DNA of 64,000 nt from positions 1 to 64,000 of the forward strand of contig NIVC01002632.1 of the NCBI GenBank assembly GCA_002269645.1, read 5' to 3'. The notes beneath the pieces were generated by a model, which saw nothing but the letters and a program-made list of their open reading frames with translations, ran no database searches and had not been told where the DNA came from. Of this stretch, positions 2,278 to 32,098 are shown piece by piece. A program made the position numbers and the translations under genes. Positions within the stretch are counted from its first letter, which is position 1. Each line of letters opens with the position of its first letter. This DNA is from Macrostomum lignano. Its lineage: Eukaryota.

Positions 2278-3335
2278 ACTAATGTGTACCAGTTGATGTG
2301 CATGAGCCTGATTTGTATGAGCCTGATGTGTATGAGCCTGATTTGTATGAGCCTGATGTGTATGAGCCTGATGTGTATGAGCCTGATGTGTATGAGCCTG
2401 ATGTGTATGAGCCTGATTTGTATGAGCCTGATGTGCATGAGCCTGATTTGTATCAGCATGATGTGCATGAGCCTGATGTGTATGACCTGATGTGTATGAG
2501 CCTGATGTGTATGACCTGATGTGTATGAGCCTGATTTGTATGAGCCTGATGTGTATGAGCCTGATGTGTATGAGCCTGATGTGTATGACCTGATTTGTAT
2601 GAGCCTGATTTGTATGAGCCTGATGTGTATGACCTGATGTGTATGAGCCTGATTTGTATGAGCCTGATGTGTATCAGCATGATGTCTATGACCTGATGTG
2701 TATGAGCCTGATTTGTATGAGCCTGATGTGTATGACCTGATGTGTATGAGCCTGATTTGTATGAGCCTGATGTGTATGAGCCTGATTTGTATGAGCCTGA
2801 TGTGTATCAGCATGATGTCTATGACCTGATGTGTATGACCTGATTTGTATGAGCCTGATGTGTATGAGCCTGATGTGTATGAGCCTGATGTGTATGACCT
2901 GATTTGTATGAGCCTGATTTGTATGAGCCTGATGTGTATGACCTGATGTGTATGAGCCTGATTTGTATGAGCCTGATGTGTATCAGCATGATGTCTATGA
3001 CCTGATGTGTATGAGCCTGATTTGTATGAGCCTGATGTGTATGACCTGATGTGTATGAGCCTGATTTGTATGAGCCTGATGTGTATGAGCCTGATTTGTA
3101 TGAGCCTGATGTGTATCAGCATGATGTCTATGACCTGATGTCTATGACCTGATGTGTATGACCTGATGTGTATGAGCCTGATTTGTATGAGCCTGATGTG
3201 TATCAGCATGATGTCTATGACCTGATGTGTATGAGCCTGATGTGTATGAGCCTGATGTGTATGAGCCTGATGTGTATGAGCCTGATGTGTATGAGCCTGA
3301 TGTGTATGAGCCTGATGTGTATGAGCCTGATGTGT
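2278..3335. repeat. 15/14-bp minisatellite (GCCTGATGTGTATGA, with a 14-bp variant lacking the G)
   Basis: Continuous tandem units; unit related to the 1808-2055 array. Confidence 0.95.
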
Positions 3336-4310: not shown

Positions 4311-4958
4311 ATGATTAGTTCAAATTGCTTAATGAACTTGCGAGTGCACATATCGGACAGAACGCATCCATGCTGTATTTCGAATGTCCAGAAGGCGACA
4401 TCGGATACAACAGTCAAAATTTTAAGAGTCATTGATACTCAAATTAAACTAATTAACCAGCACTTGATTCCTAACCATCTGTTGTACAGACGGCTATAAG
4501 CCTAGCTGTTTTTGCATCCGCGTGTAGCTTTAAACTAAAGTAAGACAAGACGCGTCACGTGCGTAAATTAATTGTCGGTGTGCAGGTCGAGCTGTATGAC
4601 CATTCTGTTGAATTGATAACATTGCAGTGTAATTGCCGTAAATAGCATTTGCAAGGTAAGAGAGATCGAGTACGCTTTTAGAAACGAGTGTACAATCATT
4701 CACTGCAGGCTACAGTAGCCGTAACCTCTTTAGTCTATAGCTTTATTGTAATTGCGCATAAACAACTTCAATTCACTGGGGTTGTTGTAGACACTTGTAA
4801 ACACTCCGAATACGGTAGTACCTACTTTTGCTATATAGTCACTAGTGATTGTTTAGGTTGGCGAATGTGCGAGCTGCTGTGTGCTGATATATTCATATAG
4901 ACAATAATTGCAGCAGCCGCGAATTGAAAGTTGCAATTCGAAAGAAACCAGCAAAGTA

Positions 4959-6021
4959 ATGGAGTCTGCTTTTTTAGTTCGCAGCAATTTCACTTCCACC
5001 GAAATTCAAAACGAGCCAATTCCGGACCGCTTTAAGTGCAGCGGCTGCTCAGAGCTGCTCGTCAACTGCTACCAGACTCCGCACGGATGCCGCCTGTGCC
5101 AGCGGTGCTTCAGCACCGAGCTGCTGCAATCCAGCGATCGAGTCTGTCCCTGCATTCATTCGCTAGACAGCTGCAGAGACCGTGCGAGACTTGTTGAGCA
5201 CTTCGTGAGTCAGGCCGACTGCTTCCCCGACATTGCAACACGAAAGGACGTGCTCGAACTTGAAGTCCGATGCTCGAACGAAGAGTCCGGCTGTGAGAAG
5301 CAGCTCACCTTGAGGCAGCTGGACTCTCATCTGACCGACGAGTGCCAGTTCGAGATCGTCACGTGCGACCGCTGCTCGGAGCGAGTCCGTCAGTTCGAGA
5401 TGAACGGCTGCCACACGGATCTGCGGTCTCCTCACTGCTGCTCCGAGTTCCGAGCTCCGTGTCCTCACTGCAGCGACTCGAGCAGCAGGCTGGACCGCTC
5501 GGAGTTCCAGGAGCACCTGATGACGTGTCCGGAGAGACCGAGCGACTGCAAGTACCGACAGAGCATCGGGTGTCAGACGAACATGGCAATGTCGCAGCTG
5601 GATGAGCACTACTGCTCGGGTACCGACGGGCACCTCGAGCTCACGGTGCAGCGCTTCCAACAGGAGCTGCAGCAAAAGGACTCCGAACTAAAAGAAATGA
5701 ATAATTCGGTCGGGCAACTGCAGGAAAAAGTCCTGAAGCTAACCGAACGTTTATTCCTATTTGAAAAGTCTCCTCTACTAAAAACACTGCTCAACCAAGG
5801 GGTAAATAATGCTTTAAATTGTAATGTTTCTCTGCAGTACAACCCATTGATGTGCCGAATTCACTGCCCCTGATCATTCGCAATTTTAGAGACGACTGAG
5901 CAACGGCGATTTAACAGAGCAGCCCGGTGAAGAAGACAATCAGAGCCAGCAGAATACCGCGATCAAAGAATCGATTACTTTCGAACAGATGAGGCGAAGG
6001 ATGTCTGCTTTTGAAGTTTGA
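4959..6021 (+). CDS. TRAF-like protein 1 (variant RING, zf-TRAF repeats, coiled coil, no MATH domain); exons 4959-5801 and 5890-6021
   Basis: CxxC..QTPHGCRLCQRC RING-like motif; FPDIATRKDVLELEVRCSNEESGC is typical of TRAFs. Phase-0 intron GGG|GTAAAT...TTTTAG|AGA (88 bp); short exon 2 ends in TGA. Confidence 0.8.
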
Positions 6022-6581
6022 ACCACAAAAAACGAAATCATATCCAATACAAACGTGTTATATATACAGGAACATTCTTGTTCGTGTACTACTGGTACGG
6101 TTTTGTGCCAACTAAGCAAAAGAAATATTTTTTCTACATAAAACGTCGTGCTGCGAGATGCGTGTACTTCAAATTCCAATGCTATTTAAAAGGAGGACCA
6201 AAAAATTCAACTCCCTGTTAAACAGCTCACTAACAGATCATTGCTGTTGTTTTATGGCATAAGTATCACTTATCTTCTAGCCTTACTTTTAGTAGCCATG
6301 AGCAACGAAGCCATTAAATTGACAGATATAAAGTGGGCAAAAAGGGTTTTTATTATCCAATTGACTGCCACTCGTTCGTTCAATTTTTTGCGCATCGATG
6401 CGCCACGTGAAGCACTTGTGGGTGTTTCCTGGGACACGAATAATCTAAAAACATTTTTTTCAGTTTTGTTCAGGAAAATCCATTAACTCCGCGATATCGG
6501 GGCATCACACGAGACTTCACTATTCCCACGTAGCGATTTTTATAGCAGTTGAACTCGAGTATCACTAATGACAAGCACACG

Positions 6582-7355
6582 TCATTCAAACGGCGAGACG
6601 CACTCGCACAGGGCATTCGTTGGGAAAGACAGCGTTTCTGGTGCGTCTACCAGCCAGCTGTGCCCGAGTAGCGGAGAATGTACTTCTCGGCATTTCCACC
6701 GTCATTTGGTTCAGCTGCAGCCCACAGGCTGGGATCGAACTCCAGACCACAGTCCAGCCACCGCCACCCTCCGCCTGGCTCGGGACTTCCCTCTTCCTGG
6801 TGGCCACCGAGCCAGATGTTCAGGCCGCTGAACTGGGAGCTGATGAAGCGCAGCTCCTCAGCGTCCAGCACGTCGGCCATGATGACGAGGTCGGTCTGGT
6901 TGGCGCAGACCTGCCGGCCCCTCTGCCAGCCGGCCGTGCCGTTCACCAGCCGGTAGCGAACCCCGCACCGCTGGGAATCGAACTCAGGCGGGCAGAGTTT
7001 TCCAGGCGGCAGGCCCGGTCGCTGCTTCACGAAGACCAGACCGAAGGCCGAGCAGCTGGCGCTGCAGTCCCGCACGCCTTTGCTGCACCTGTCGAACACG
7101 AACAGCTGGCAGGGGCCGCGGGCCAAGCTGAAGGCCTGGCAGCGGGGCCTGCTGGCGCAGAGCAGCGAGCACAGGACTCCGATGCTGCCGCGCTGCTGCC
7201 CAGGGGCGTCTCCGTGAACTCGCTGCGATGCACAGGCTGGCGTTCACGGCTGTGAATGCCTGCTGCGATGAGCACCGGCTGCTGCCAGCTGTCACCGAGA
7301 TCAGTAGGCACTGCAGCTCGAGCAGGATTGCCAGGAATTTGTTGAGGATCTTCAT
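6582..7355 (-). pseudogene. Signal peptide + PAN/apple-like + C-type lectin gene, copy 1, with three apparent 1-bp frameshifts
   Basis: MKILNKFLAILLELQCLL leader; CSLLCASRPRCQAF PAN-like motif; CTLD motifs WLGG, WRWLD, EPND, then WLVD..ALCE in the next frame. The indels could be assembly errors. Confidence 0.65.
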
Positions 7356-9298
7356 TTCGAGACTTTAAAATTTTGCTAATCTTGCATTTGAAATCGTAGC
7401 ACAAAACTCAATAACGAATTTCTAATATTTAGGAGCAGATCATCGCTTTTTATGCACTCACCAATCCCAGAGTTTGTTATAATCGATCTAGCAAAGCTCG
7501 TCCAATGAGATTGAGGCTGCATTTTTACATGTAGAGAACATGGGGGTGTAGACCAGTGGTCTGGCGAGGCGCTCTGATGTGCCAGCGGTCCAGGCTCGAT
7601 TCCAAGTACAGACACATTAATTTTGAGGCTAAATAGGAATCTTGGCTTGGCTCTGCTCGTGCAATTACGCTCGTAATTCCCAGCTTAAGGGCCAACCCCC
7701 AAGGCACAGTGAAGTGTACATGCCTAACGATAAATTAAGTTAGGGCCGCTGTACACTCCTGTGTGAGTGAGTGCCTGTGCGTATGACTGCGTACGTATTC
7801 GCGCCCTTGTGTGCTGCACACAAGCTGACACCAAGTTGTTGTAGGCGTCAAGTCCCAAAACGGCGTTATCAATGATCGAGAGGTTCCCGGCTTTCTTCAT
7901 TTCCAGGGGACTCCCCCCCATAGCTTTTCACTTGGCACAGGGCAAGTTGCCCCTTTACTTCACTCTGCAACACGTGTAAAGCAGTTAAACACCAATTGTT
8001 TCACTGCAGAAAGAACGCCTTTTTCTCTGCAACAAAACGAGTTTTTCTTTGCAATTACTGTTCTATCGACAAACACTCCTTTTAGAAGAATGATTAAGAT
8101 AAGACTACAGATTCAGAACTGATTAAGAAAAGGTTAAAACCCGTGAAAGAATTTTCTCCTTGCGCTCCTCTGTATAAATACTAATTTAAGTTGGCTACCT
8201 ATTGGATCGCGCCTATGGTCCAATAAAGTCTAGCATAGTTAACAAAAATCAATCGCATTAAAACAAATCATACAGTATAACAAATTTATTTTAAACACTA
8301 AATTGTAGAATATTACTATTATTAAAAAATTGTTACAATACTATTGAAATGACTACCACACAAACTGGCTCGTACTGCAAACGATAAAAAAGATATACAC
8401 TGAAACAGTAAAAAATAATGATGTTATCCCTACACCTCGGGCCTATATAATACGGTAGGGTGTACAGGGTACGGGTGCACCTTGCTTGTCGGTTGTCAGG
8501 ATGTTCCTATGCGGATCATACCTGCATCAGGACGCCAGGTAGCCTAAACTACAGTAAGTAGGCGTCAGGACACACGAAGCCTTAGTTGCCCCCTTTTGGC
8601 AACCAAAAGAAGGAAGACAGAGGAACGCATCCAACTTTCCTAGCTCCTTTCAATACGTCTCTTTGAATTGGATCTTTTCCATAGGAAAATGTCCTTACGG
8701 CGAGAGCAAACCAATCACAGGACAGCACCGAAAGCCAAACTAGGTATAGAGAGGCGAGTGACGACGCCCAGACTACCTTAAATGGCTAGCGCACGCGGGG
8801 GGGGGAGAGGCTGCAAACCCCCGAGCCCACCAACCCCCACAACCCTCCCGACAGGCCCTGCCCCACGCCAGCCAATCACACCGCGGCGGGGGGTGAGGAA
8901 AAACTGAGCCAGCTGCCCGGCCCAGCCAATCCACACCAGGCCTTCACATAACAACTTAAGCAGATATCACTGACAGAATGCTACCAAATTAACATGCTAC
9001 CAAATTAACATGCAAGTACCAAACTTATGGTCCAAAGCAGCACCGCGGTCACCCAACCTACTGACGTACGACGCAGAGTCGGCTAGGACCAGACAGCTCG
9101 AGTGATTCTCTAATGCCTCTGGCACGCGTGCCAGTTGAGGTGCGACGGGCGTACGACGCGTCCAACCAGTAAAACCTTCCAAAAACGGACGACAACAACT
9201 GGGACTTACACTCGTACGTAGCCACAAAAAACGGCTGAGCCAATCAACTAGAGCGACAACAAAAACAAAAAATACGTCAGATAGTCAAGCGTGGGACA

Positions 9299-10070
9299 AT
9301 GTCACAGGGCGCGTTTCAGGGCCTGGGCGCGAACGTAGGCCGCACCGCCGGCATCAGCCAACAGGCAGTCGACGAAACGCCAAGTGCGGGCCTGCCCCCG
9401 CCGGTAAGGTTCCTGCAGCGTGAGCAAAAGCACTTCCTGCACCGGCTGTGGGCAGTACGACTCGGCTCGGATAGAATGGCTTTGCCAGCTGGAGTCGTCG
9501 ATGGCGCAACATTTCGCTGGGACGGGACAGGCTGGTGCGGCGATAGAGTGCCGCAATGGTGACTCGCTCGTAGCCGATCTTGAAGCGGCGCGCAGCAGTC
9601 CAGCGTGCGCCGCATCGACCTGCTGTTCGAGTGAATCAGACAGGGCCCAGGTCTCGGCGTTGTACAACAGTACGGTTTCGATCACCGCCTGGAACAACGC
9701 CGCCCTCTGGCGGTCAGGTAGGGCCTTGGACTTCCTCGAAAAGGAAGGCAGCCCAGGCAAGTCCACAGCAAAGTCGCAGGTCCTCACGAACGTCAGGTAC
9801 CAGACCGCCGAGATAGACGAACTGCTGACATCGCGGAAGCCTCGTCACCTGCGCGTCTGCGCCTCGGCAGAAAATTGCAGCCTCAATGTCGTCCGGCACG
9901 CAGAGCACAACGGTCTTCTGCGTGTTGACCACCAGGCCGACGCCGCAACGCTTACCAGCCGGTCCAGCTGGCGCTGGGCGCCCTCGACGGTCGAGGAAAG
10001 GAGGGCGAGATCGTCGGCGTAGCCAAGCACGCTGAGCCGCGCAAGCGACAGTAACGGCGCAAGCGATCTC
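9299..10070 (-). mobile_element. 5'-truncated RTE-type non-LTR retrotransposon fragment (RT C-terminal half), copy 1, frameshifted
   Basis: LGYADDLALL, VNTQKT, FVYLG and LLYNAETW(A/T)L motifs split across frames. Confidence 0.8.
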
Positions 10071-10483
10071 CCTTTAGAGTGAGATAAACGAATGAGAAAA
10101 GAGTCAATCGCGACTCAACCTAGCCTAGGGTTTGGGGGGGGGATCGACATTGCGGTACAATTAAGCAGGGGTGGCTAGGCGGAGAACTAAACTAGGCGGC
10201 GCATTCACCCCACAATTACCGGAGGTTGTCGTGCGATTCACAACCATTAGAGCCAACTCCAATGCTCGAGAGTGTATATGCCTGACCGATAAACAGTTAG
10301 GGCCTCTGTACACCCTGAGACGCTGATAGACTAGCTCGAACAACACGCTGACGGCCGTCGAACGCTGGCCAGATCGACAACGTAGGAGACATGCCACTGC
10401 TTTGTCCCCCCTACCCCACCTTGTTGACCTGTTATGGAAATCAATCATTTCACTTCAGGGCGACAAAACATAGCATCTGCACC

Positions 10484-10640
10484 ATTAAATTGAGTGCATG
10501 CGGCGCTAAAATGAGTGCCTGTGGCACTAAAATGTGTTCCTGCTGCGCTAAATTGAGTGCATGCGGCGCTAAAATGAGTGCCTGCGGCGCTAAAATGAGT
10601 GCCTGCGGCGCCAAAATGAGTGCCTGCGGCGCTAAAATGA
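10484..10640. repeat. 21-bp minisatellite (TGCGGCGCTAAAATGAGTGCC), about 7 units, in the spacer between the duplicate copies
   Basis: Direct tandem periodicity; ORFs 10391-10678 and 10450-10812 are its translation. Confidence 0.9.
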
Positions 10641-11472
10641 TCGCTGACAACACCGGTTCGGAAATAATGTACATGTAGGAATTTAGTAATGTATATGTAG
10701 ATGTAGAACTCTCGGCTTCGTCTCCCCTACCATAAAATCCATGGCGACGCTCCTGTAACTTGTAAGAAAAACGCTGTGCGTAAGAGCGTAAGATACAATG
10801 AGGTTTTGCCATATATAAAAAATGATTTCAGTAGCTGAAATATTCGCCGGAACTTTGCAAGATTAGTTTTAGTGTATCCTGTGGTTATAGTAGCTCAATT
10901 AACTTGCGAGTTCACATCGGACCAAACGCATGCATGCTGCATTTCAAATGTCCAGATGGTGAGACCTCGGATCCAACAGTCAACATAGGGTTAATGATAC
11001 TCAAATTAAACCATAATTAACCAATACTTGTTTACTAAAAACTGTGCAAACGACTACATAAACTTGTTGTTCAACTAAAAATAAGATAAGACGCATCACG
11101 TGCATAAATTTCAGTGTGCAGGTCGCGCTGTGGGACAGTTCTGTTGAATTGACAACATTGCAGGGTACTTGCCATAAATAGAATTGAGAAGAGAAATAGA
11201 AGAGAAACGAGTGTACGAGCTACAACCCTTCACTGCAGACTACAGTAGCCCTAACCTCTTTAGGTTATCTATAGCTTAAATGTACTTGCACGCACACAAC
11301 CGAATTCATTTACCTGGGGTTGTTGCAGCCAGTTGTAAACACTCCAAACACGGTAGTACCTACTTTTGTTATGTTATAACCAGTGACTGTTTTGGATGAG
11401 AAATTCGCGAGCTTGCTGTGTAGAAGCCGCAAATTTTACGTCGCAAGTTGAATGACACCATAGCAAGCTAAA

Positions 11473-12562
11473 ATGGAGCAAGCTTTAGTGCGAAGCGATT
11501 TATCTTCTATCAAAATTCGAAACAAGCCGATACCGAACCATTTAATGTGCAGCGGCTGCTCAGAGCTGCTCATAAATTCCTACCAGACTCCGCACGGATG
11601 CCGCCTGTGCCAGCGGTGCTTCAGCACCGAGCTGCTGCAATCCAGCGATCGAGTCTGTCCCTGCATTCATTCGCTGGACAGCTGCAGAGACCGTGCGAGA
11701 CTTGTTGAGCACTTTGTGAGTCAGGCTGTCTGCTTCCCCGACACTGCAACACGTAAGGACGTGCTCGAACTTGAAGTCCGATGCCCGAACGAAGAGTCCG
11801 GCTGTGAGAAGCAGCTCACCTTGAAGCAGCTGGACTCTCATCTGACCAACGAGTGCCAGTTCGAGATCGTCACGTGCGACCGCTGCTCGGAGCGAGTCCG
11901 TCAGTTCGAGCTGAACGGCTGCCACACGGATCTGCGGTCTCCTCACTGCTGCTCCGAGTTCCGAGCTCCGTGTCCTCACTGCAGCGACTCGAGCAGCAGG
12001 CTGTACCGCTCGGAGTTCGAGGAGCACCTGATGACCTGTCCGGAGAGACCGAGCGACTGCAAGTACCGACAGAGCATCGGGTGTCAGACGAACGTGGCAA
12101 TGTCGCAGCTCGATGAGCACTACTGCTCGGGTACCGATGGCCACCTGGAGCTCACGGTGCAGCGCTTCCAACAGGAGCTGCAGCGAAAGGACTCCGAACT
12201 AAAAGAAATCAATAATTTGTTGATGAAGCTCAAGACCAGAGATAAACAGAGGGCCATTGAAGTCGGACAACTGAAGGAAAAAGTCCTGAAGCTAACCGAA
12301 CGTTTATCCACCTTTGAAAAGTCTCCTCTACTAAAAACACTGCTCAATCAAGGGGTAAATAAGGCTTTAAATTGTAATGTTTCTCAGCATTAAAACCCAT
12401 CGATGTGCCGAATTCACTGCCCCTGTTTATCCGCAATTTCAGAGACGACTGAGCAACGGCGATTTAACAGAGCAGCCCGTTGAAGAAGACAATCAGAGCC
12501 AGCAGGATGCCGCCGTCAAGGAATTGAACAGGATGGGTCGAAGGAGATCTGTTGTTTTTTGA
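11473..12562 (+). CDS. TRAF-like protein 2 (paralog of 4959-6021; no MATH domain); exons 11473-12354 and 12443-12562
   Basis: Same RING/zf-TRAF motifs; same phase-0 intron GGG|GTAAAT...TTTCAG|AGA; exon 2 RRLSNGDLTEQP..RRRSVVF-stop. Confidence 0.8.
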
Positions 12563-13144
12563 ATTTGAAAAACGAATCATAAATCTATATACAACCGTGT
12601 TAGTGTACTACTGGTACGGTTTTGTGCCAACTTAACGCAGAAAATAACATATTTTTCTAACCTACTCGTAGAGTGCTGTGAGATAGCTCGTACTTCTAAT
12701 TCCATTACTAAAATATTTAAAACGAGGACCGAAGAAATCCAACTCCCTAATGATAAACAATTTGATTGATATTTGCTAAGAGATTTTCTGCTGTTTCATA
12801 GCAAAAGTATCCCAATTATCTTACTAGCCTTACTTTTAGTAGCCACGAGCAACAAAGCAATGTATGGTTTTTTATCAAATTGACAGATATAAAGTGGGCA
12901 AAAAGGGCTTTTATATTATCCAATTGACTGCCACTCGTTCGTTCAATTTTTTGCGCATCGATGCGCCACGTGAAGCACTTGTGGGTGTTTCCTGGGACAC
13001 GAATAATCTGAAAACATTTTTTTCAGTTTTGTTCAGGAAAATCCATTAACTCCGCGATATCGGGGCATCACACGAGACTTCACTATTCCCACGTAGCGAT
13101 TTTTATAGCAGTTGAACTCGAGTATCACTAATGACAAGCACACG

Positions 13145-13919
13145 TCATTCAAACGGCGAGACGCACTCGCACAGGGCATTCGTTGGGAAAGACAGCGTTT
13201 CTGGTGCGTCTACCAGCCAGCTGTGCCCGAGTAGCGGAGAATGTACTTCTCGGCATTTCCACCGTCATTTGGTTCAGCTGCAGCCCACAGGCTGGGATCG
13301 AACTCCAGACCACAGTCCAGCCACCGCCACCCTCCGCCTGGCTCGGGACTTCCCTCTTCCTGGTGGCCGCCGAGCCAGATGTTCAGGCCGCTGAACTGGG
13401 AGCTGATGAAGCGCAGCTCCTCAGCGTCCAGCACGTCGGCCATGATGACGAGGCCGGTCTGGTTGGCGCAGACCTGCCGGCCCCTCTGCCAGCCGGCCGT
13501 GCCGTTCACCAGCCGGTAGCGAACCCCGCACCGCTGGGAATCGAACTCAGGCGGGCAGAGTTTTCCAGGCGGCAGGCCCGGCCGCTGCTTCACGAAGACC
13601 GACCGAAGGCCGAGCAGCTGGCGCTGCAGTCCCGCACGCCTTTGCTGCACCTGTCGAACACGAACAGCTGGCAGGGGCCGCGGGCCAAGCTGAAGGCCTG
13701 GCAGCGGGGCCTGCTGGCGCAGAGCAGCGAGCACAGGACCTCCGATGCTGCCGCGCTGCTGCCCAGGGGCGTCTCCGTGAACTCGCTGCCGATGCACAGG
13801 CTGGCGTTCACGGCTGTGAATGCCTGCTGCGATGAGCACCGGCTGCTGCCAGCTGTCACCGAGATCAGTAGGCACTGCAGCTCGAGCAGGATTGCCGGGA
13901 ATTTGTTGAGGATCTTCAT
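13145..13919 (-). pseudogene. Signal peptide + PAN-like + C-type lectin gene, copy 2, with two apparent 1-bp frameshifts
   Basis: Near-identical to 6582-7355. N-terminal PAN part is in frame; frameshifts at AFG/LVFVK and before WLVD. Confidence 0.65.
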
Positions 13920-15867
13920 TTCGAGACTTTAAAATTTTGCTAATCTTGCATTTGAAATCGTAGCACAAAACTCAATAACGAATTTCTAATATTTGGGAGC
14001 AGATCATCGCTTTTTATGCACTCACCAATCCCAGAGTTTGTTATAATTGATCTAGCAAAGCTCGTCCAATGAGATTGAGGCTGCATTTTTACATGTAGAG
14101 AACATGGGGGTGTAGACCAGTGGTCTGGCGAGGCGCTCTGATGTGCCAGCGGTCCAGGCTCGATTCCAAGTAGAGACACATTAATTTTGAGGCTAAATTG
14201 GAATCTCGGCTTGGCTCTGCTCGTGCAATTACGCTCGTAATTCCCAGCTTAAGGGCCAACCCCCAAGGCACAGTGAAGTGTACATGCCTAACGATAAATA
14301 AAGTTAGGGCCGCTGTACACTCCTGTGTGAGTGTGCCTGTGCGTATGACTGCGTACGTATTCGCGCCCTTGTGTGCTGCACACAAGCTGACACCAAGCTG
14401 TTGTAGGCGTCAAGTCCCAAAACGGCGTTATCAATGATCGAGAGGTTCCCGGCTTTCTTCATTTCCAGGGGACTCCCCCCATAGCTTTTCACTTGGCACA
14501 GGGCAAGTTGCCCCTTTACTTCACTCTGCAACACGTGTAAAGCAGTTAAACACCAATTGTTTCACAGACAGAACGCCTTTTTCTCTGCAACAAAACGAGT
14601 TTTTCTTTGCAATTACTGTTCTATCGACAAACACTCCTTTTAGAAGAATGATTAGGATTAGACTACAGATTCAGAACTGATTAACCGAAAAGGTTAAAAC
14701 CCGTGAAAGAATTTTCTCCTTGGGCGCCTTTTATTAATACTAATTTAAGTTGGCTCCCTATTAGATCGCGCCTATAGTTCAATAAAGTCTAGCATAGTTA
14801 ACAAAAATCAATCGCATTAAAACAAATCATACAGTATAACAAATTTATTTTAAACACTAAATTGTAGAATATTACTATTATTAAAAAATTGTTACAATAC
14901 TATTGAAATGACTACCACACAAACTGGCTCGTACTGCAAACGATAAAAAAGATATACACTGAAACAGTAAAAAATAATGATGTTATCCCTACACCTCGGG
15001 CCTATATAATACGGTAGGGTGTACAGGGTACGGGTGCACCTTGCTTGTCGGTTGTCAGGATGTTCCTATGCGGATCATACCTGCATCAGGACGCCAGGTA
15101 GCCTAAACTACAGTAAGTAGGCGTCAGGACACACGGAGCCTTAGTTGCCCCCTTTTGTAACCAAAAGAAGGAAGACAGAGGAACGCATCCAACTTTCTTA
15201 GATTTTTTCAACACGTCTCTTTGGATTGGATCTTTTCCATAGGAAAACGTCCTTACGGCGAGAGAAAACCAATCACAGGACAGCACCGAAAGCCAAACTA
15301 GGTATAGAGAGGCGAGTGACGACGCCCAGACTACCTAAATGGCTGGCGCACGCGGGGGGGAGAGACTGCAAACCCCCGAGCCCTCCAACCCCCACAACCC
15401 CTCCCGACAGGCCCTACCCCACGCCAGCCAATCACACCGCGGCGGGGGGTGAGGAAAAACTGAGCCAGCTGCCCGGCCCAGCCAATCCACACCAGGCCTT
15501 CACATAACAACTTAAGCAGATATCACTGACAGAATGCTACCAAATTAACATGCAACCAAATAAACATGCAAGTACCAAACTTATGGTGCAGAGCAGCTCA
15601 GCGATCATCCCAACCTACTGACGTACGACGCAGAGTCGGCTAGGAAGACTGCTCGAGTGATTCTCTAATGCCTCTGGCACGCGTGCCAGTTGAGGTGCGA
15701 CGGGCGTACGACGCGTCCAACCAGTCAAACCTTCCAAAAACGGACGACAACAACTGGGACTTACACTCGTACGTAGCCCCAAAAAAACGGCTGAGCCAAT
15801 CAACTAGAGCGACAACAACAACAAAAAATACGTCAGCCAGCAAACGTGGGACAATGTCACAGGGCGC

Positions 15868-16640
15868 GTTTCAGGGCCTGGGCGCGAACGTAGGCCGCAC
15901 CGCCGGCATCAGCCAGCAGGCAGTCGACGAAACGCCGAGTGCGGGCCTGCCCCCGCCGGTAGGGTTCCTGCAGCGTGAGCAAAAGCACTTTCTGCACCGG
16001 CTGTGGGCAGTACGACTCGTCTCAGATGATATGGCCTTGCCAGCTGGAGTCGCCGATGGCGCAACATTTCGCTGGGACGGGACAGGCCGGTGTGGCGATA
16101 GAGTGCCGCATTGGTGACTCGCTCGTAGCCGATCTTGAAGGCGGCGCACAGCAGGCCAGCGTGCGCCGCATCGACCTGCTGTTCGAGTGAATCAGTCAGG
16201 GTCCAGGTCTCGGCGTTGTACAACAGTACGGTTTCGATCACCGCCTGGAACAACGCCGCCCTCTGGCGGTCAGGCAGGGCCTCGGACTGCTGGACAGCCC
16301 TCACGGAACGGAAGGCAGCACAGGCAAATCCATAGCAAAGTCGCAGGTCCTCACGAACGTCAGGCACCAGACCGCCGAGATAGACGAACTGCTGACATCG
16401 CGGAAGCCTCGTCACCTGCGCGTCTGCGCCTCGGCAGAAAATTTCAGCCTCATGTCGTCCGGTACGCAGAGCACAACGGTCTTCTGCGTGTTGACCACCA
16501 GGCCGACGCTCGCCGCAACGCTTACCAGCCGGTCCAGCTGGCGCTGGGCGCCCTCGACGGTGGAGGAAAGGAGGGCGAGATCGTCGGCGTAGCCAAGCAC
16601 GCTGAGCCGCGCAAGCGACAGTAACGGCGCAAGCGATCTC
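15868..16640 (-). mobile_element. 5'-truncated RTE-type LINE fragment, copy 2
   Basis: SVLGYADDLALL, FVYLGG, LLYNAETWTLT and RRLQLA motifs; frameshifts present. Confidence 0.8.
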
Positions 16641-17077
16641 CCTTTAGAGTGAGATAAACGAATGAGAAAGGTCAATCGCGACTCAACCTAGCCTAGGGTT
16701 TGGGGTGGGATCGACATTGCAGTACAATTAAGCAGGGGTGGCTAGGCGGAGACCTAAACTAGGTGGCGCATTCACCACACTTACCGGAGGTTGTCGTGCG
16801 ATTCACAACCATTAGGGCCAACTCCAAGGCGCAGAGAGTGTACATGCCTGACCGATAAACAGTTAGGGCCTCTGTACACCCTGAGGCGCTGACAGACTAG
16901 CTCGAACAAGACGTTGACGGCCGTCGCACGCTGGCCAGATCGACAACGTAAACGTCGGCGACGAGTGAGTCACCAACGCGTCACTGTATCCCTGCGCCGG
17001 TGTGTCCCGTCCACATCATCCGCGCCGAGTCACACAGATTATTATGTACAAAACTTAAATCTCGTTTTTTTTTTTTT

Positions 17078-18242
17078 TTAGTTTCCGCCAGGCACAGCCA
17101 ATTCCGCGTTGGTCTCTTCCGTCAAACTCTCCGACGCGGTTCTCTTGCGGCTGGGCAGCCAATTGGTCGAAAATGGGCTCGATTGCACCCGTCGATGACA
17201 ACCTTTCGACGGTAAAGCTGCAACCGATGCTGGAGTCGAAGATTCGCGTCCGAGTTCCGAGACGTTGTTGGCAGAGACGCGATTGGTAATTGTCTCCAGA
17301 GACCTTCGCAACTCAGGCTTGGTTGCTGAGACCGAAGCTTCGGATTTGGCCTGCAATAAAGGAGCGCTGCTACATGCATATCAACTCAAAGTGGCTAATT
17401 CAGTTTTAGATCTTAATCACAATGACAGTGTTTACTATACGAACCTGTTTGGCTTCGATGAGCTTGATCCTAGCTTTTAGATCACCATTTTCCTTCTCCA
17501 AGCGTGTTATTTTTGCAGCATCACTGCACTTGGACGCCTGCAATTCTTTGACTATGTTGCTCATCATAAGCAAGTGCTCATTAGTGTTTTGGCTGTAATG
17601 CTCAGTCAGCTGCCTCTGCTTTGACCTCGCTCGACAGCCAAACTCGGCGAACGGACATTTCACAGGAATCTCAGAGCAAGTCTTTGCATGCTCAATAAAG
17701 TCCACACGGTTTAGCATGTCACTGCCGTAGCCGAAGAAGCCGCAGTAGCCGCAGTGGCAGCGGAAGTGTACACAGCAGTCGGCAGACTCCAGATTGCAGT
17801 GAACAAGGTGCAGCTTGTACACAATGATTTCCCTGAGACAAAATTGGCACGCGACGGTCTCGTACTCGCATTTCTGCTTCAAGTGCTCCTCTAGCATCTT
17901 CCACTGCATCTGCTCAGAGCATCCGAGGTCAGCATTCGGACAGAAGACCCACAACTCGGACAGCTCCCGTCGGGTGGCCAAGTCCGGCAGGCATCGGTCA
18001 CGGCAAACCCAACGCTGTCGTTCGCCATCGACATTGCTGTCGTTGTCCTGGTCTGTTGTTCCCGGACAGGGCCCGCAGTGTGTCGGATGCAAGCTGTTTA
18101 CGCACACCTGGCACAGTCTGAATCCTTGCGGCGTCTGGAAGCAGTTGACCAACAGTCCTTTGCAGGCTTTGCAGACAAAATAATTGGGGACTGCTGATTG
18201 AGACACAGGCTTGGCACGCAGGGCTCTTTCTGATAGCTCCAT
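17078..18242 (-). CDS. TRAF-like protein 3 (degenerate RING, zf-TRAF, coiled coil, Ser/Thr-rich tail, no MATH); exons 18242-17445 and 17350-17078
   Basis: PDLATRRELSELWVFCPNADLGC and CPFAEFGC..EH TRAF motifs; phase-0 intron CAG|GTTCGT...TTGCAG|GCC (94 bp). Confidence 0.8.
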
Positions 18243-19765
18243 TGATCTGGATTTAGCTGTACGAGTATAAAGAATTGTAAGAAAAACGTAGGCGCTTTAT
18301 TTCATTTAAAAAATATTGGCGCTTTGGTCATAGTACACGGATGAAGGAATGTGAGTTTAGTTTAACAAATTCTGAAGGTATTTCCAAGGCAATTCCGTGG
18401 GTTAGCAGAATACACTGGCCAGTGTACAATAGCATAGTGTACGCACAGTAGTAGAGGTTAAACTACCCCCTGCCCAGAAGTACGTATTCGAAGCATGGAA
18501 TACGGTGCGAGAACATTCAACTTGTCGCTTTACCCTCGATTAATAGTAAGCTAAGCTGCATGACCGACTTTGCGGGCGAAATCTAGAGTAAACAGTACGC
18601 GCACCTATCTGGCTTGTCAGGACTAATGCAAAATAAACGGCAAATCCGCGGAAAAGCCGCGGAAATTTCGCGGTAGAAAAACCTTTCGGTTGAAGGCTAT
18701 GAGTGGAAGCATAGCATAGTTTTAGGTCTTTCCTAATAATACTTAGGAAAATTAGGCTTCGTAAAATTTCTAGTCAGCACGATATGATAAAAGAGATGCA
18801 AATTTAGTCTGAAGATGGGAGAGAGCGGCAGTTTCGCTGTCGGATCGTAAAAATAGACCGACTTGCAATTGAGTGTAGAATTTTCTAAAATAATAGTTTA
18901 TTTTGTCATGAAAAGATCGGTATAAAGTGGCTCTAAAATTAGTTAGAAAAGCGCGAATCATAACTTAGGCATCTAGTAATCAAATATGTAGAACTTTTGC
19001 TAAGTAAAATCTGGAAATAGGATATCTTACGATAACAAGAGGAAACATGATTCGATTGTTGAAAAAACATTCGGACGGAGTGCACTCGTCCTTTGTCCCT
19101 TAAATATAAAATCTTGGTTGCTAGAATAACACTAGAGATAGAAGACAAACTTTGATGCGCTAGAAAACGATGAAAATGGAAAAAATCTTTGTGCTCTGGG
19201 TCGATATATTTACGAGTTCTGACTGTAAGTGTACAATACTCGTTCATGAACAATTAAATGAAAAAATCTATAATCCACACAAACGAAAGATAAACACTCG
19301 TACAAAAGTTGGGCGGTCGAAATTTGGCAATGTACGTACATATTCGAACAAATATGCTATATGTTAAACTGATCGTATAACTATTGCAGACCCCAGATGT
19401 AAAAGAACAAAAAACAGTGGCAGCTCCAAAACAAGGCTTGATTTTAATATTCAAAAAAATTCTTATTTGCTGAAAAGCGCGTCGGGTGTCATGAAACTCA
19501 TTAAAAAGTTCTTAACAAAGAAATATGCTAGCAGAACTTCACTTTGTAACGTTTTTACTTCCACCAGCAAACTTCGACAAGAAAGCTTCAGAGTAAATTT
19601 CACAGTCACTTAAAAGTCAGTCGATTTAAGCTGGCAATATAAACGGACAAGACCAGTCGATATTTCAATGCGAGACGGCCGTTAAAATGTTTTGCATAGG
19701 CGTGATCGACTGATCCGTTTTGATGACCAACTTTGTTATATTTTCCTCAGTGATGTATGCCTGAT

Positions 19766-20830
19766 TTATTTCATTACTGCTCTGTACGTTACTGTGGCTG
19801 TGGCATACGTTACTGTGGCATAGTGAGAAGCTTTGGCAGACTCCAGGCTTTGGGACGTACCGGTAGGTGAAAAGAAGGACTGTCTCAAGCGCTTGATTTT
19901 AGGGATCAAATAAAGAGCGGTTGAAGAAGGACGAGCTACAGGCTCTAGATTAGCACCGGAAGTACTGCTAAATGGCCAAATTGAACATACGGCAATGCTG
20001 CATCCCAGAAAGAGTATGGCCAATGCGACCAATAGAAACAGTGCTAGATACCATATGGTAGTTTTCTGGGCTTGGCTTTTACATTTAAGCTTCTGATTCT
20101 CCTTCTCCAAGCGATCCATTCTCCAGCGCTGGGCGCTGATGCAACAGCCAATCATAAGCAAGTGTTCGTTGTTACATTGGCTGAAATGCTCAGTCAGCTG
20201 CCTCTGCTTTGGCTTCACTTGACAGCCAAACTCGGCGAACGGACATTTCACAGGGATCTCAGAGCAAGTCTTTGCATGCTTAATAAAGTCCACACGGTTT
20301 AGCATGTCACTGCCGTAGCCGAAGAAGCCGCAGTAGCCGCAGTGGCAGCGAAAGTGCACACAGCAGTCGGCAGACTCCAGATTGCAGTGAACAAGGTGCA
20401 GCTTGTACACAATGATTTCCCTGAGACAAAATTGGCACGTGACGGTCTCGTACTCGCATTTCTGCTTCAAGTGCTCCTCTAGCATCTTCCACTGCATCTG
20501 CTCAGAGCATCCGAGGTCAGCATTCGGACAGAAGACCCACAACTCGGACAGCTCCCGTCGGGTGGCCAAGTCCGGCAAGCATCGGTCACGACAAACCCAA
20601 CGCTGACGTTCGCCATCGACATTACTGTCGTTGTCCTGGTCTGTTGTTCCCGGACAGGGCCCGCAGTGTGTCGGATGCAAGCTGTTTACGCACACCTGGC
20701 ACAGTCTGAATCCTTGCGGCGTCTGGAAGCAGTTGACCAACAGTCCTTTGCAGGCTTTGCAGACAAAATAATTGGGGACTGCTGATGGAGACACAGGCTT
20801 GGCACACAGGGCTCTGTCTGATAGCTCCAT
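19766..20830 (-). CDS. TRAF-like protein 4 with predicted C-proximal transmembrane helix, no MATH domain
   Basis: N-terminal ~225 aa nearly identical to the 18242 gene, followed by IWYLALFLLVALAILFLGCSIAVCSIWPF in one uninterrupted 354-aa frame. Splicing of the extreme 3' end is uncertain. Confidence 0.75.
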   Translation of the reverse strand: MELSDRALCAKPVSPSAVPNYFVCKACKGLLVNCFQTPQGFRLCQVCVNSLHPTHCGPCPGTTDQDNDSNVDGERQRWVCRDRCLPDLATRRELSELWVFCPNADLGCSEQMQWKMLEEHLKQKCEYETVTCQFCLREIIVYKLHLVHCNLESADCCVHFRCHCGYCGFFGYGSDMLNRVDFIKHAKTCSEIPVKCPFAEFGCQVKPKQRQLTEHFSQCNNEHLLMIGCCISAQRWRMDRLEKENQKLKCKSQAQKTTIWYLALFLLVALAILFLGCSIAVCSIWPFSSTSGANLEPVARPSSTALYLIPKIKRLRQSFFSPTGTSQSLESAKASHYATVTYATATVTYRAVMK

Positions 20831-21237
20831 TGATCTGGAGTAGGTGGGAAGGTAAGCAGCTAAAGATTTAAGCTGGAATTATATTAACGGAAGCGTTAAA
20901 ATGTGTCTATCGAATCTATGCTTAGTCTATATGTTCCGATCAAAAACACTCAATCCCTGTGTGCAGAGGTACTCTTTACAACAGAACAACTTTATGAAAG
21001 TACGCATACTTTCAGCTTACAAAACTCACTTTTCCCAAGAATTAAAATAATTAAGTTTTCAAAGTTTGATAGCAAATAGCAAACATATCATTTTTGTATT
21101 TAATAAAATGCTGGACAATGCAGTGTCTATTTAATTTACTAATTAAACAAGTAGTTCAGTATACTCGTAGAGCATGTAATTTTGCCGCGTAAAGTAAATG
21201 CACAAATTTTGACAGCTACGGTTTCTTATCCTCAGCC

Positions 21238-25480: not shown

Positions 25481-26179
25481 TTTTCAAATTTATTTAGCGC
25501 TACATGCAGTAGAGTGATTCGGATTAAAATGCATTTCAACAGTATAACGTTATACTAATTTAAAACATTTTGGCAACCTTACGCTACTAAAAGTAGGGTA
25601 ATTTGGGTGTTGACATATAAATAAAATGTAACAGTAAAAAATCCTGTTAAATTTCAACATTTGGTAATTTAACGCTACTGAAAGTAGTGTATTGCGCTTA
25701 GCGCAAACCTGGCACCGTAAACAAACAATAACTACTATACTAACTTCTATACTATTATTTCTTTAAAGTTTAAATAAAATCAAGTCTTCAACACAATTCT
25801 CAACAGTCAAACGCAATTGCCCGCGCCAACTTTACTTGCATCAATATATAGATAAATGTATCAGATTTATATATCAATTATGGCACAAGAACAATGAAAA
25901 CAATTAAAATTTTACTAATGATTCTCAAAATGTCAATCTGCGAGACCAGACCTCAATAACACGAGAGATAAGAATCAGTTAGAATAAAATTCCTATGTAA
26001 TTTTTCATTTAAAATGTTACATTGAACGATTAGAGGAACATGGAATTAGATAAACTTATAACTACGAGCGACACATATAATAAGACCCTAGTAGAAGTAC
26101 ATATGAACTCGAGCCAACGCAATAGGATTAAGGATACTCAAGGTAAATCCAACACAGGCAGACATACTATCCCTCAGAC

Positions 26180-26766
26180 TGACCTTCAGGTGCGCTATTT
26201 GCTTAATCATCCTGACCTTCAGGTGCCGCTATTTGCCCTATCATCCTGACCTTCAGGTGCCGCTATTTGCCCTATCATCCTGACCTTCAGGTGCCGCTAT
26301 TTGCCCTATCATCCTGACCTTCAGGTGCCGCTATTTGCCCTATCATCCTGACCTTCAGGTGCCGCTATTTGCCCTATCATCCTGACCTTCAGGTGCCGCT
26401 ATTTGCCCTATCATCCTGACCTTCAGGTGCCGCTATTTGCCCTATCATCCTGACCTTCAGGTGCCGCTATTTGCCCTATCATCCTGACCTTCAGGTGCCG
26501 CTATTTGCCCTATCATCCTGACCTTCAGGTGCCGCTATTTGCCCTATCATCCTGACCTTCTGGTGCCGCTATTTGCCCTATCATCCTGACCTTCAGGTGC
26601 CGCTATTTGCCCTATCATCCTGACCTTCAGGTGCCGCTATTTGCCCTATCATCCTGACCTTCAGGTGCCGCTATTTGCCCTATCATCCTGACCTTCAGGT
26701 GCCGCTATTTGCCCTATCATCCTGACCTTCAGGTGCCGCTACTTGTCCTATCATCCTGACCTTCAG
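26180..26766. repeat. Homogeneous 34-bp minisatellite (CCTGACCTTCAGGTGCCGCTATTTGCCCTATCAT), about 17 units
   Basis: Nearly identical abutting units with no spacers. Confidence 0.95.
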
Positions 26767-26826
26767 ACACCTCTCCAATTGCTACATTCACCAGCTCACA
26801 GCTTCAGTAAACCGACACCGCCTTCA

Positions 26827-29633
26827 TCACCGAACAATTTTAGCCCGGTTCATCCGCCTCTCCTGCTTCTTCTGTTTTTTAGCATCCGCTTCGGTCTCCT
26901 CGGGTGCCGGAGCAAAGAACCATGGGCCAAGGATGTTCACCCAGAGCAGGTAGAACAGGCGGATGGGGACAGCGATGAGCAGGCAGAAGCAGTAAGTGTG
27001 CAGTTGGGCCAGGACCAAGGTGCCCGCAGTCCACAGAAGAACATCCTGCCGGCGATAGGTTGCAGATATAGGATAGTATTATATCTTTTATTATTTATTA
27101 TTTAGTTTTAAATTATATATCTCCGCTTCAAAAAAAGATCTTACCCAATCCTGTCTATGATTTCACTTTTTCGATTAAGAGAACTCATCCATTCTACTAG
27201 AGATCTCACTCATTCTACTAGAGATCTCACCCATTCTACTAGAGAGTTCACCTATTCTACTAGAGAGTTCACTCATTCTACTAGAGAGTTCACCCATTCT
27301 ACTAGAGATCTCACCCATTCTACTAGAGATCTCACCCATTCTACTAGAGATCTCACCCATTCTACTAGAGATCTCACCCATTCTACTAGAGATCTCACCC
27401 ATTCTACTAGAGATCTCACCCATTCTACTAGAGATCTCACTCATTCTACCTGAGATCTCACCCATTCTACTAGAGATCTCACCCATTCTAATAGAGATCT
27501 CCCCCGTTCTACAAAGAGATCTCACCCATTCTATTAGAGATCTCACCCATTCTACTAGAGATCTCACCCATTCTACAAAGAGATCTCACTCATTCTACTA
27601 GAGATCTCACCCATTCTACTAGAGAGTTCACCTATTCTATTAGAGATCTCACCCATTATACTTGAGATCTCACCCATTCTACTAGAGATCTCACCCATTC
27701 TAATAGAGATCTCACCCGTTCTATTAAAGATCTCACCCATTCTACAAAGAGATCTCACCCATTCTATTAGAGATCTCACTCATTCTACTAGAGATCTCAC
27801 CCATTCTACAAAGAGATCGCACCCATTCTACAAAGAGATCTTATTCATTCTACTTGAGATCTCACCCATTCTATTAGAGATCTCACCCATTCTACAAAGA
27901 GATCTCACCCATTCTATTAGAGATCTCACTCATTCTACTAGAGATCTCACCCATTCTACAAAGAGATCGCACCCATTCTACAAAGAGATCTTATTCATTC
28001 TACTTGAGATCTCACCCCTTCTATTAGAGATCTCACCCATTCTACAAAGAGATCTCACCAATTCTACGAAGAGATCTCACCCATTCTACTAGAGATCTCA
28101 CTCATTCTACTTGAGATCTCACCCATTCTACTAGACATCTCACCCATTCTATTAGAGATCTCACCCATTCTACAAAAGAGATCGCACCCATTCTACAAAG
28201 AGATCTTATTCATTCTACTTGAGATCTCACACATTCTATTAGAGATCTCACCCATTCTACAAAGAGATCTCACCAATTCTACGAAGAGATCTCACCCATT
28301 CTACTAGAGAGTTCACCTATTCTACTAGAGAGTTCACTCATTCTACTAGAGAGTTCACCCATTCTACTAGAGATCTCACCCATTCTACTGGAGATCTTAC
28401 CCATTCTACTAGAGATCTCACCCATTCTACTAGAGATATCACCCATTCTACAAAGAGATCTCACTCATTCTACTAGAGATCTCACTCATTCTACTAGAGA
28501 TCTCACCCATTCTACAAAGAGATCTCACTCATTCTACTAGAGATCTCACTCATTCTACTAGAGATCTCACCCATTCTACTAGAGAGTTCACCTATTCTAT
28601 TAGAGATCTCACCCATTCTAATAGAGATCTCACCCGTTCTATTAAAGATCTCACCCATTCTACAAAGAGATCTCACCCATTCTATTAGAGATCTCACCCA
28701 TTCTACTAGAGATCTCACCCATTCTACAAAGAGATCTCACTCATTCTACTAGAGATCTCACTCATTCTACTAGAGATCTCACCCATTCTACTAGAGAGTT
28801 CACCTATTCTATTAGAGATCTCACCCATTCTACTTGAGATCTCACCCATTCTACTAGAGATCTCACCCATTCTACTTGAGATCTCACCCATTCTACTAGA
28901 CATCTCACCCATTCTATTAGAGATCTCACCCATTCTACAAAGAGATCGCACCCATTCTACAAAGAGATCTTATTCATTCTACTTGAGATCTCACACATTC
29001 TATTAGAGATCTCACCCATTCTACAAAGAGATCTCACCAATTCTACGATGAGATCTCACCCATTCTACTAGAGAGTTCACCTATTCTACTAGAGAGTTCA
29101 CTCATTCTACTAGAGAGTTCACCCATTCTACTAGAGATCTCACCCATTCTACAAAGAGATCTCACCCATTCTACTAGAGAACTCAACCATTCTACTGGAG
29201 ATCTCACCCATTCTACTAGAGAACTCAACCATTCTACTGGAGATCTCACCCATTCTACTGGAGATCTTACCCATTCTACTAGAGATCTCAGCCATTCTAC
29301 TAGAAAATAACAAATTACCTTAAAGTGCTCAGCCATGCCGTGCTCCATATTTAAATCCTGACCGGCATCAACCAGCTGCCCAGTAGGGGAATAAGTGGCC
29401 GCTGACATGCTAGACATCACTTTGTACATTCCGCCTAGTAGAGCTTCGCACACGATAATAAGCGCCAAATGCCAATTAGATATTGAAGACCAAAATAACA
29501 GAGTGCAAGGCAAAGCGAACGCATTGACGCCGAGGATAATGCGTTGATAGAGCTGCAAAGTTGACGCGTTCTCTTCCGTGATTTGTTTCTGGCCTCGGGT
29601 GGCCGTTTTGCCCGGCTTGGTTGTTGCTTTCAT
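26827..29633 (-). CDS. TMEM208: Transmembrane protein 208 (SND2 family); exons 29633-29319 and 27045-26827 (~177 aa)
   Basis: TRGQKQITEEN, GQLVDAGQDLNMEHGMAEHFK|DVLL, LLWVNILGPWF and basic tail KKQERR; phase-0 intron AAG|GTAATT...GGCAG|GAT. Confidence 0.92.
27185..29303. repeat. 21-bp minisatellite (AGAGATCTCACCCATTCTACT), about 100 units, filling the TMEM208 intron
   Basis: Continuous periodicity with recurrent variant blocks. Confidence 0.95.
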
Positions 29634-32040: not shown

Positions 32041-32098
32041 GAGAAGGTTTCAAAGGACACAATGAACTCTAAATCTACTAGCAAAAACTATTAATTAA

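Follow-up and report, generated by a model that had tools for sequence, protein, structure and literature searches.

How could a protein with the zinc-finger head of a TRAF, lacking the TRAF-C/MATH domain, still serve the cell? The question is raised by four genes clustered in the window, i.e., positions 1-64000 of Macrostomum lignano contig NIVC01002632.1 (assembly GCA_002269645.1), the whole 64-kb stretch of DNA analysed here. The initial annotation of this stretch had described them as four MATH-less TRAF-like genes in two subfamilies, a description that our analysis confirms. Based on sequence comparison, we give a probability of roughly 0.6 to the reading that they are a lineage-specific cluster of four functional TRAF-descended genes, the products of which would act through dimerisation of the RING and first zinc finger (RING-ZF1), as partners that are blind to the ubiquitin-conjugating enzyme (E2) and undocked from receptors.

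Four Intact Genes in Two Subfamilies

The list of open reading frames (ORFs) contained four long ORFs with Cys/His-rich heads where the initial annotation had placed them. Spliced models were derived from the sequence; A1 and A2 form subfamily A, and B1 and B2 form subfamily B.

4959-5801 + 5890-6021, plus strand: A1 gene, 324 aa
4959..5801, plus strand: A1 exon 1, with a RING-like domain (H-x-C variant), four TRAF-type zinc fingers, and a coiled coil; defined by the ORF and a GT donor at 5802
5890..6021, plus strand: A1 exon 2, a 43-aa acidic tail with the end RRRMSAFEV; joined in frame after an AG acceptor at 5888-5889 and homologous to A2 exon 2
11473-12354 + 12443-12562, plus strand: A2 gene, 333 aa
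11473..12354, plus strand: A2 exon 1, from a spliced model that equals deposited protein P0001 exactly; TRAF6 RING-ZnF match, E=3e-9
12443..12562, plus strand: A2 exon 2, a 39-aa acidic tail with the end RRRSVVF
18242-17445 + 17350-17078, minus strand: B1 gene, 356 aa
17445..18242, minus strand: B1 exon 1, with a degenerate RING (ligands 3/4 are Q and F), four TRAF-type zinc fingers, and a short helical stretch
17078..17350, minus strand: B1 exon 2, a 90-aa Ser/Thr-rich tail; a run of 15 A follows the stop codon
19766..20830, minus strand: B2, a single exon of 354 aa, with a B1-type head; a short helix leads into a transmembrane segment at aa 259-286, and the last ~70 aa form a Ser/Thr-rich tail

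All four genes are intact at these coordinates, and the three introns (88, 88, and 94 nt) all have GT-AG ends. P0001, to which the A2 model is identical, is the product of Mlig001616g2 (333 aa); the B1 model is identical to P0004 (Mlig031668g5), annotated on a sister contig, and the B2 model to P0003, while A1 shares 96.6% DNA identity with the gene for P0002 on a sister contig. A1 and A2 are ~83-89% identical to each other, B1 and B2 share 86% of their first ~250 residues, and the identity between A and B is ~33%. The 15-A run directly after the B1 stop codon (17063-17077) is genomic. The idea, suggested by this run, that B1 is a retrocopy was rejected, since B1 contains an intron.

Zinc-Finger Heads

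The best solved-structure match of both A and B proteins was the RING+ZnF1-3 portion of TRAF6 (E=3e-9 for A2 and E=1.9e-6 for B2), with TRAF2 and TRAF5 lower in the PDB match lists. The TRAF-type zinc finger PF02176 is precomputed on P0001-P0004, and four CCHC fingers can be read in each of the four proteins, compared with five in their MATH-bearing paralogue P0006. In the RING of A proteins all eight ligand positions are filled; however, ligands 3 and 4 are arranged as H-x-C and not as C-x-H, as in the C3HC4 order. B proteins lack these two zinc ligands, having Q and F instead (QTPQGF in both B1 and B2). Among 66 RING-bearing matches, the H-x-C order was found in 14, all from the Macrostomum clade, and C-x-H in the other 52. 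The inverted signature (QTPHGC versus QTPCGH) is located at 11548-11622 in the A2 RING and is also seen in relatives P0006-P0013, MATH-bearing members included.

The I72D/L74R substitutions in TRAF6 abolish Ubc13 binding (PMC5702613). In the alignment, A proteins have G/S and B proteins have A/K at these two E2-contact positions. The equivalents of TRAF6 R88, P119-D120, and the basic K/R125, which belong to the RING-dimer and ZF1 linker-helix positions, are invariant in all four proteins. Because the E2-contact residues are replaced, and because B additionally lacks two RING ligands, A and B proteins are probably not autonomous E3 ubiquitin ligases.

Absence of the MATH Domain

The TRAF-C/MATH beta-sandwich is the defining domain of TRAFs (PMC3697994, PMC5702613), and it is found in none of the four proteins. 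Six MATH domains, three of which came from the closest relatives, produced only noise in a tblastn search of the 64 kb (best E = 0.43). Among 157 relatives that were collected, 78 MATH domains were found; a hidden Markov model (HMM) made from them reached no better than E = 0.05 in the six-frame translation of the window, while in the positive control, the P0006 locus (L004), the same model scored 4e-44. It detected nothing in 41 kb of sister contigs, nor in two other zf-TRAF clusters, L006 and L007. The initial annotation had predicted proteins positive for zf-TRAF and negative for MATH, and that is what the searches returned: as judged from sequence, A and B are true MATH-less derivatives of TRAFs. 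The receptor-independent role that had been proposed for them follows from the absence of TRAF-C.

Coiled Coils and Tails

The sequence downstream of the fingers was evaluated using a crude heptad score compared with shuffled controls and Kyte-Doolittle(19) hydrophobicity. A coiled coil had been described as shared by all four genes; this was upheld for A, where heptads scored above shuffles, but not for B. Over residues ~219-284 of A proteins the heptad score was 0.78-0.88, above the 95th percentile of shuffles (0.62-0.68). In an AlphaFold2 model of A2 built from a five-sequence alignment (predicted local distance difference test, pLDDT, 56; predicted template modelling score 0.27), only the long helix was used; it spans residues 221-282 at pLDDT 74-83. 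The A coiled coil consists of 8 heptads and is followed by an acidic/basic tail encoded by the second exon. The coiled coil of A1 is 14 residues (two heptads) shorter than that of A2 (5700-5712 versus 12211-12265); since the missing stretch is exactly 14 residues, the heptad register is kept.

The tails are as initially described: acidic and then RRR, Ser/Thr-rich, or transmembrane-containing. Those of A proteins (39-43 aa) are acidic, then RRRxS, and those of A1 and A2 are homologous (same exon 2). The 90-aa tail of B1 is 27% Ser/Thr. In B2, a hydrophobic segment with a Kyte-Doolittle(19) value of 2.89 at residues 264-282 precedes the last ~70 aa, and no segment as hydrophobic was found in A1, A2, or B1 by the same measure. 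A tblastn comparison of each coiled coil and tail with the window and every locus retrieved gave no match beyond the gene of origin and its copy on a sister contig. The proposal that the tail is a swapped module fits B, where the 3' part was exchanged or has diverged from a break at about codon 226, but not A, where the tails are homologous.

Duplication and Origin of the Cluster

Self-comparison of the window by blastn revealed a tandem duplication that contains the A genes, and the B genes share a shorter block.

4327..10384, no strand: tandem duplication copy 1, with A1, lectin copy 1, and a reverse-transcriptase fragment (6199-nt self-blastn alignment)
10893..16950, no strand: tandem duplication copy 2, with A2, lectin copy 2, and a reverse-transcriptase fragment
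17563..18251, minus strand: B1 part of the shared block, 689 nt (9 nt of 5' flank and codons 1-~226), 96.5% identical to that of B2
20151..20839, minus strand: B2 part of the shared block, 689 nt

The duplicated unit is 6.57 kb long and holds an A gene, a lectin gene, and a retrotransposon fragment. Identity between the two units is a mosaic of 76-99.5%: the upstream region and the first ~48 A codons are ~81% identical, the finger core 96-98%, and the coiled coil, tail, and 3' untranslated region 76-92%, while the lectin reaches 99.5% and the reverse-transcriptase fragment 93-99%. Between the units (10391-10812) lies a unique stretch of ~500 nt; it includes a short tandem repeat, the ORFs of which read MSACGAK repeats. 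Homology between B1 and B2 breaks sharply near codon 226; beyond this point only an 18-nt island (RLEKEN) can be aligned, and flanks and tails cannot. We infer that the mosaic heads result from patchy gene conversion or from partial duplication. A collinear copy of the locus, ~97% identical, is present on sister contigs NIVC01000668.1 (L002) and NIVC01003055.1 (L003), in line with the known redundancy of the assembly, and B1 and B2 are each 100% identical at the nucleotide level between sister contigs.

A profile search against 1.8 billion representatives yielded 2240 matches, nine of which had E < 1e-30. Eight of the nine were from M. lignano; the ninth, P0008, stems from one public sequencing run, as assembled in Logan. 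The closest non-self relatives include the MATH-bearing M. lignano TRAFs P0006 (Mlig002242g1/PAA62526.1) and P0153, of 551 aa, and P0010 (A0A1I8HJH6), of 520 aa, as well as the MATH-less P0007 (PAA78655.1), P0009 (PAA91135.1), and P0155 (PAA91136.1). P0006 is encoded by one uninterrupted exon; therefore, the ancestral gene type had MATH and fingers in one ORF. A and B proteins are 35-38% identical to P0006 over the head, and BLAST alignments end right after the last finger.

A neighbour-joining tree (227 columns, 200 bootstraps) that included M. lignano TRAFs (the initial annotation had recommended a phylogeny with flatworm TRAFs) placed A and B in a Macrostomum clade of mixed MATH-bearing and MATH-less proteins, together with the MATH-bearing P0006 and P0010. 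P0007 and P0008 are inside the MATH-bearing group with 92-99% bootstrap, A groups with P0009/P0155 with 71% bootstrap, and the position of B has 40% bootstrap. The tree therefore indicates that MATH was lost at least twice within this Macrostomum-specific clade. Since the nearest MATH-bearing relatives are single-exon TRAFs, the comparison further indicates that A and B lost MATH when the 3' end of the gene was replaced.

Clusters of similar composition occur elsewhere in the genome. L006 (NIVC01000672.1) contains three MATH-less zf-TRAF genes coding for 367-380 aa, and L007 (NIVC01000094.1) contains two, coding for 408 and 279 aa; no MATH-coding sequence was detected by HMM within 17-29 kb of these genes. 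Two older gene calls, P0005 (806 aa) and P0157 (2531 aa), each fuse an A2-type gene to an antisense lectin read-through and neighbouring sequence, and are artefacts that inflate the apparent domain architectures.

Selection and Transcription

The ratio of non-synonymous to synonymous substitution (dN/dS, omega) was calculated by the Nei-Gojobori method. For A1/A2, omega was 0.48 over the whole gene, 0.27 over the finger core, and 0.78 over the coiled coil plus tail, the last value being not different from 1 (P=0.28). Exon 1 of A1 compared with its sister-contig copy gave 0.27, and the B1/B2 shared block gave 0.30-0.39. The deficit of non-synonymous changes was significant for the A1/A2 whole gene, the A1/A2 finger core, and B1/B2 (P=0.006-0.008). 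Positive selection was rejected on these values. The locus had been called rapidly diversifying; ratios of 0.27-0.48 instead mean constraint, relaxed only in the A coiled coil and tail, and by this measure the genes are constrained and are not a positively selected arms-race locus.

The deposited M. lignano gene models were built from assembled RNA-seq data, supported by spliced-leader and poly(A) evidence (PMC5730564); since they rest on transcript-based annotation, each gene type is, by implication, transcribed. The sequence just upstream of the ATG is CTCCAG/ATCAATG in B2 (20831-20840) and ATCCAG/ATCAATG in B1 (18243-18252), where the slash marks the putative splice site, and both fit or nearly fit the spliced-leader acceptor motif [T/C]TNCAG. 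The deposited P0004 coding sequence is 5'-partial and begins 3 nt before the ATG. The acceptor-like motifs and this 5'-partial start suggest that B1 and B2 are trans-spliced, perhaps from a shared transcriptional unit. Both B genes lie behind ANAPC2 in its own orientation (the spacers measure 408 and 1524 nt), which makes such a unit possible, and on the sister contig the order is TMEM208, ANAPC2, B2, B1, in one orientation.

Proposed Mechanism and Competing Explanations

The four genes descend from full-length TRAFs and belong to the Macrostomum H-x-C clade, which still holds single-exon MATH members. In the A and B lineages, all sequence after the last zinc finger was replaced. The cluster appears to have grown by the 6.57-kb tandem duplication, with the lectin and the retrotransposon fragment carried along with A1/A2, and by a duplication of B. 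The zinc-finger heads most likely stay similar through patchy gene conversion while the 3' ends diverge. Without TRAF-C, the products would not dock on receptor tails and presumably would not recruit E2 by the route used by TRAF6. Most likely, they are E2-blind, dimerise via RING-ZF1 with E2-competent TRAFs, and tune the building of ubiquitin chains, A as a soluble oligomer and B2 from a membrane, with the tails setting localisation or regulation. There is precedent for such a partnership: RING heterodimers allow an E2-blind TRAF to contribute its ZF1, as seen in vitro for TRAF5-TRAF6 (PMC5702613).

Several observations weigh against this reading. The placement of B in the tree has only 40% bootstrap, and the B coiled coil is unsupported, with a heptad score of 0.50-0.57 that is not above shuffles and about three heptads around RLEKEN recognised by eye only. 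The AlphaFold model is poor (pLDDT 56), and the mechanism is drawn from residue conservation alone; the inverted or missing ligands might leave a RING without any fold. On this contig A1 and B1 are unannotated, and only their sister-contig copies are annotated. A search for the gene IDs in the supplements of PMC5730564 and PMC5816591 found nothing. Finally, the A2 copies on L002 and L003 each have a 1-nt deletion (window-equivalent positions 11784 and 12129), and some A2 copies may be decaying, or these may be assembly indel errors.

Some of these observations are what would be expected of decaying duplicates or fragments, i.e., young truncated copies that have no function and resemble one another only through recent duplication and gene conversion. 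The deletions in A2 copies, the unannotated state of A1 and B1, the near-neutral ratio of the A coiled coil and tail, and the broken frame of the co-duplicated lectin all agree with decay. Yet none of the four ORFs is interrupted, the introns have GT-AG ends, three independent comparisons gave dN/dS values significantly lower than 1, each gene type has a transcript-based model, the 14-aa deletion in the A1 coiled coil spares the heptad register, and B1 and B2 are without a single difference between sister contigs that are otherwise ~97% identical; decay is thus distinctly improbable. It is extremely improbable that the genes are full-length TRAFs after all, with MATH coming from exons beyond the window or added by trans-splicing. 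M. lignano does have trans-splicing and long transcriptional units, but spliced-leader trans-splicing adds a 5' leader only, the ancestral type held MATH in the same single-exon ORF, the searches found no MATH in the 64 kb or in the 41 kb of sister contigs, and annotated transcripts end at the stops described above.

The products could also be dominant-negative decoys that co-assemble with MATH-bearing paralogues (e.g., P0006) and block receptor-proximal signalling. A and B belong to the same clade as P0006 and P0010, their dimer-interface residues are conserved, and the lack of E2-contact residues in all four proteins, together with the lack of RING ligands 3/4 in B, is typical of inactive partners. 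However, the coiled coils of A and B are unlike the TRAF-N of P0006, with alignments ending at the last finger, which makes mixed trimers, and thus heterotrimerisation via TRAF-N, unlikely. Moreover, the MATH-bearing paralogues share this type of E2-blind RING, which leaves no ligase activity in them to block. We regard decoys as unlikely, and the evidence does not separate inhibition from activation. The preferred reading remains that of functional, E2-blind partners that would pair through RING-ZF1.

Lectins and Other Neighbours

The secreted lectin genes that had been described as interleaved with the TRAF-like genes are present and encode a signal peptide, but they flank A genes only, because they are part of the 6.57-kb tandem duplication, and both window copies are frame-broken.

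6582..7355, minus strand: lectin copy 1, with a signal peptide, a PAN/apple-like cysteine pattern, and a C-type lectin domain (EPN); 1-nt deletions near 7227, 7178, and 6654
13145..13919, minus strand: lectin copy 2, the same gene as copy 1; 1-nt deletions near 13601 and 13217
9302..10030, minus strand: reverse-transcriptase fragment copy 1 (putative non-LTR type, i.e., without long terminal repeats), seen as ORFs homologous to copy 2
15909..16675, minus strand: reverse-transcriptase fragment copy 2, with a YADD motif and a weak R2 reverse transcriptase match (E=0.0024), a fragment in broken frames

The best PDB matches of the lectin were the C-type lectin domains of CD23 and langerin (E=4.8e-6). 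When five copies were aligned, the one at 11661-12522 of L002 proved to be intact, an uninterrupted single-exon ORF of 258 aa, relative to which the window copies have three and two 1-nt deletions, mostly in short G runs. Rescue of the lectin frames by short introns was rejected, since the L002 copy is an uninterrupted single exon. The lectin deletions, like those in the A2 copies on L002 and L003, could be PacBio indel errors or pseudogenisation. No annotated gene exists at any lectin copy; M. lignano lectin paralogues are 41-48% identical, and one of them, P0158, is named a C-type lectin domain protein.

The remaining neighbours of the cluster in the window are ANAPC2, a TMEM208-like gene, satellites and transposon remnants, and an alpha-SNAP-like gene. 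None is immune-related, and the lectins are unannotated and frame-broken, so the designation of the region as an innate-immune locus was not borne out. Large satellite arrays, in which units of 13-41 nt recur as many as 110 times, occupy 4-1221, 2294-3335, and 26179-37850, some of them in or near ANAPC2 and the TMEM208-like gene, and are responsible for extreme swings of GC skew at 26-36 kb. An ORF of 796 aa at 45937-48327 (minus strand) resembles Hermes transposase (E=4.7e-5) in a C-terminal dimerisation region of the hAT type, and a shorter ORF that adjoins it, at 48821-49333 (plus strand), is by its look a candidate mariner-type transposase fragment. A single-exon ORF of 287 aa at 57262-58125 (plus strand) resembles alpha-soluble NSF attachment protein (E=1.7e-22).

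Implications

The genes are real but only modestly novel, and they already have deposits as unnamed hypothetical proteins; their products carry the names "hypothetical" or "TRAF-type domain-containing", and literature searches turned up no paper in which these genes, or any MATH-less TRAF of Macrostomum, are described. TRAF expansions are known in planarians, where they were counted by MATH domains (PMC6109357), and head-only derivatives are missed by counts that rely on MATH. In M. lignano, several clusters of MATH-less TRAF descendants are documented here with a validated negative search, and constraint was measured at the present locus. The locus also displays a route by which such genes may originate, through tandem duplication, 3'-end replacement, and, probably, homogenisation of heads limited by conversion. 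As for annotation, the frames of the lectins and certain A2 copies should be checked against the reads.

A broader conjecture, which we consider quite unlikely as a whole, is that Macrostomum has repeatedly converted TRAFs into receptor-blind and E2-blind "head-only" modules, in which the RING-ZF1 face would pair with E2-competent TRAFs while freely evolving tails would direct them to compartments, as a soluble oligomer (A), a phospho-regulated protein (B1), or a membrane-anchored one (B2). If true, ubiquitin signalling of the K63 (lysine 63) type would be tuned by an endogenous system of modules, a natural counterpart of the TRAF RING-heterodimer mechanism, so far seen in vitro only. With the transgenesis and RNA interference available in M. 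lignano, the ability of E2-blind TRAF heads to act on ubiquitin signalling via RING heterodimers could possibly be tested in vivo.

Comparison with Known Systems

The part of TRAF6 that includes the RING and ZnF1-3 (PDB 3HCS, 5VO0, 8HZ2) has the same order as the A and B heads: RING, linker helix (PD..A.[KR][KR][ED]), and CCHC fingers, with the R88 equivalent invariant. Unlike TRAF6, A and B proteins have no TRAF-C/MATH, contain four fingers and not five, have RING ligands 3/4 inverted (A) or absent (B), and carry G/S or A/K in place of I72/L74. P0006 and P0010 are closer, being of the same clade, with the QTPHGC RING signature and 35-38% head identity; however, they have an extra zinc finger, a coiled coil of their own, and MATH, all in one exon, and past the last finger A and B are wholly divergent from them. 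P0007, P0009, and P0155 combine, like A and B, a RING-like domain with zf-TRAF in the absence of MATH and also occur in small clusters, but their tails differ, and P0007 is a simple truncation that retains the P0006 coiled coil. A transmembrane anchor of the B2 type was seen in none of the other M. lignano MATH-less zf-TRAF genes read here.

The first knuckle of TRAF2, C-S-A-C, is like C-S-G-C in the A and B heads. The TRAF2 RING (PDB 3KNV), a PDB match of both A and B, differs from them in its canonical C-x-H ligands and in being part of a protein with a full TRAF domain. It appears, too, not to bind E2 (PMC5702613). In its predicted layout (a RING-type head on the cytosolic side, then a helix, then a membrane anchor at the C-terminus), B2 resembles TRIM13 and TRIM59, which are arranged as RING, B-box, coiled coil, and transmembrane segment; unlike B2, they belong to a B-box zinc-finger family and not to zf-TRAF.

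TRAF7 (RING, zf-TRAF, coiled coil, and WD40) is another case of a TRAF-type N-terminal half without TRAF-C. Its C-terminal part contains seven WD40 repeats, for which A and B proteins, ending 39-90 aa after the helix in low-complexity or transmembrane tails, have no room, though no WD40 profile search was made. The TRAF family is defined by TRAF-N plus TRAF-C, and the membership of TRAF7 is disputed for want of TRAF-C (PMC3697994). Because the defining domain is absent, A and B proteins should not be named TRAFs; they are TRAF-derived RING-like/zf-TRAF proteins, with a status comparable to that of TRAF7.

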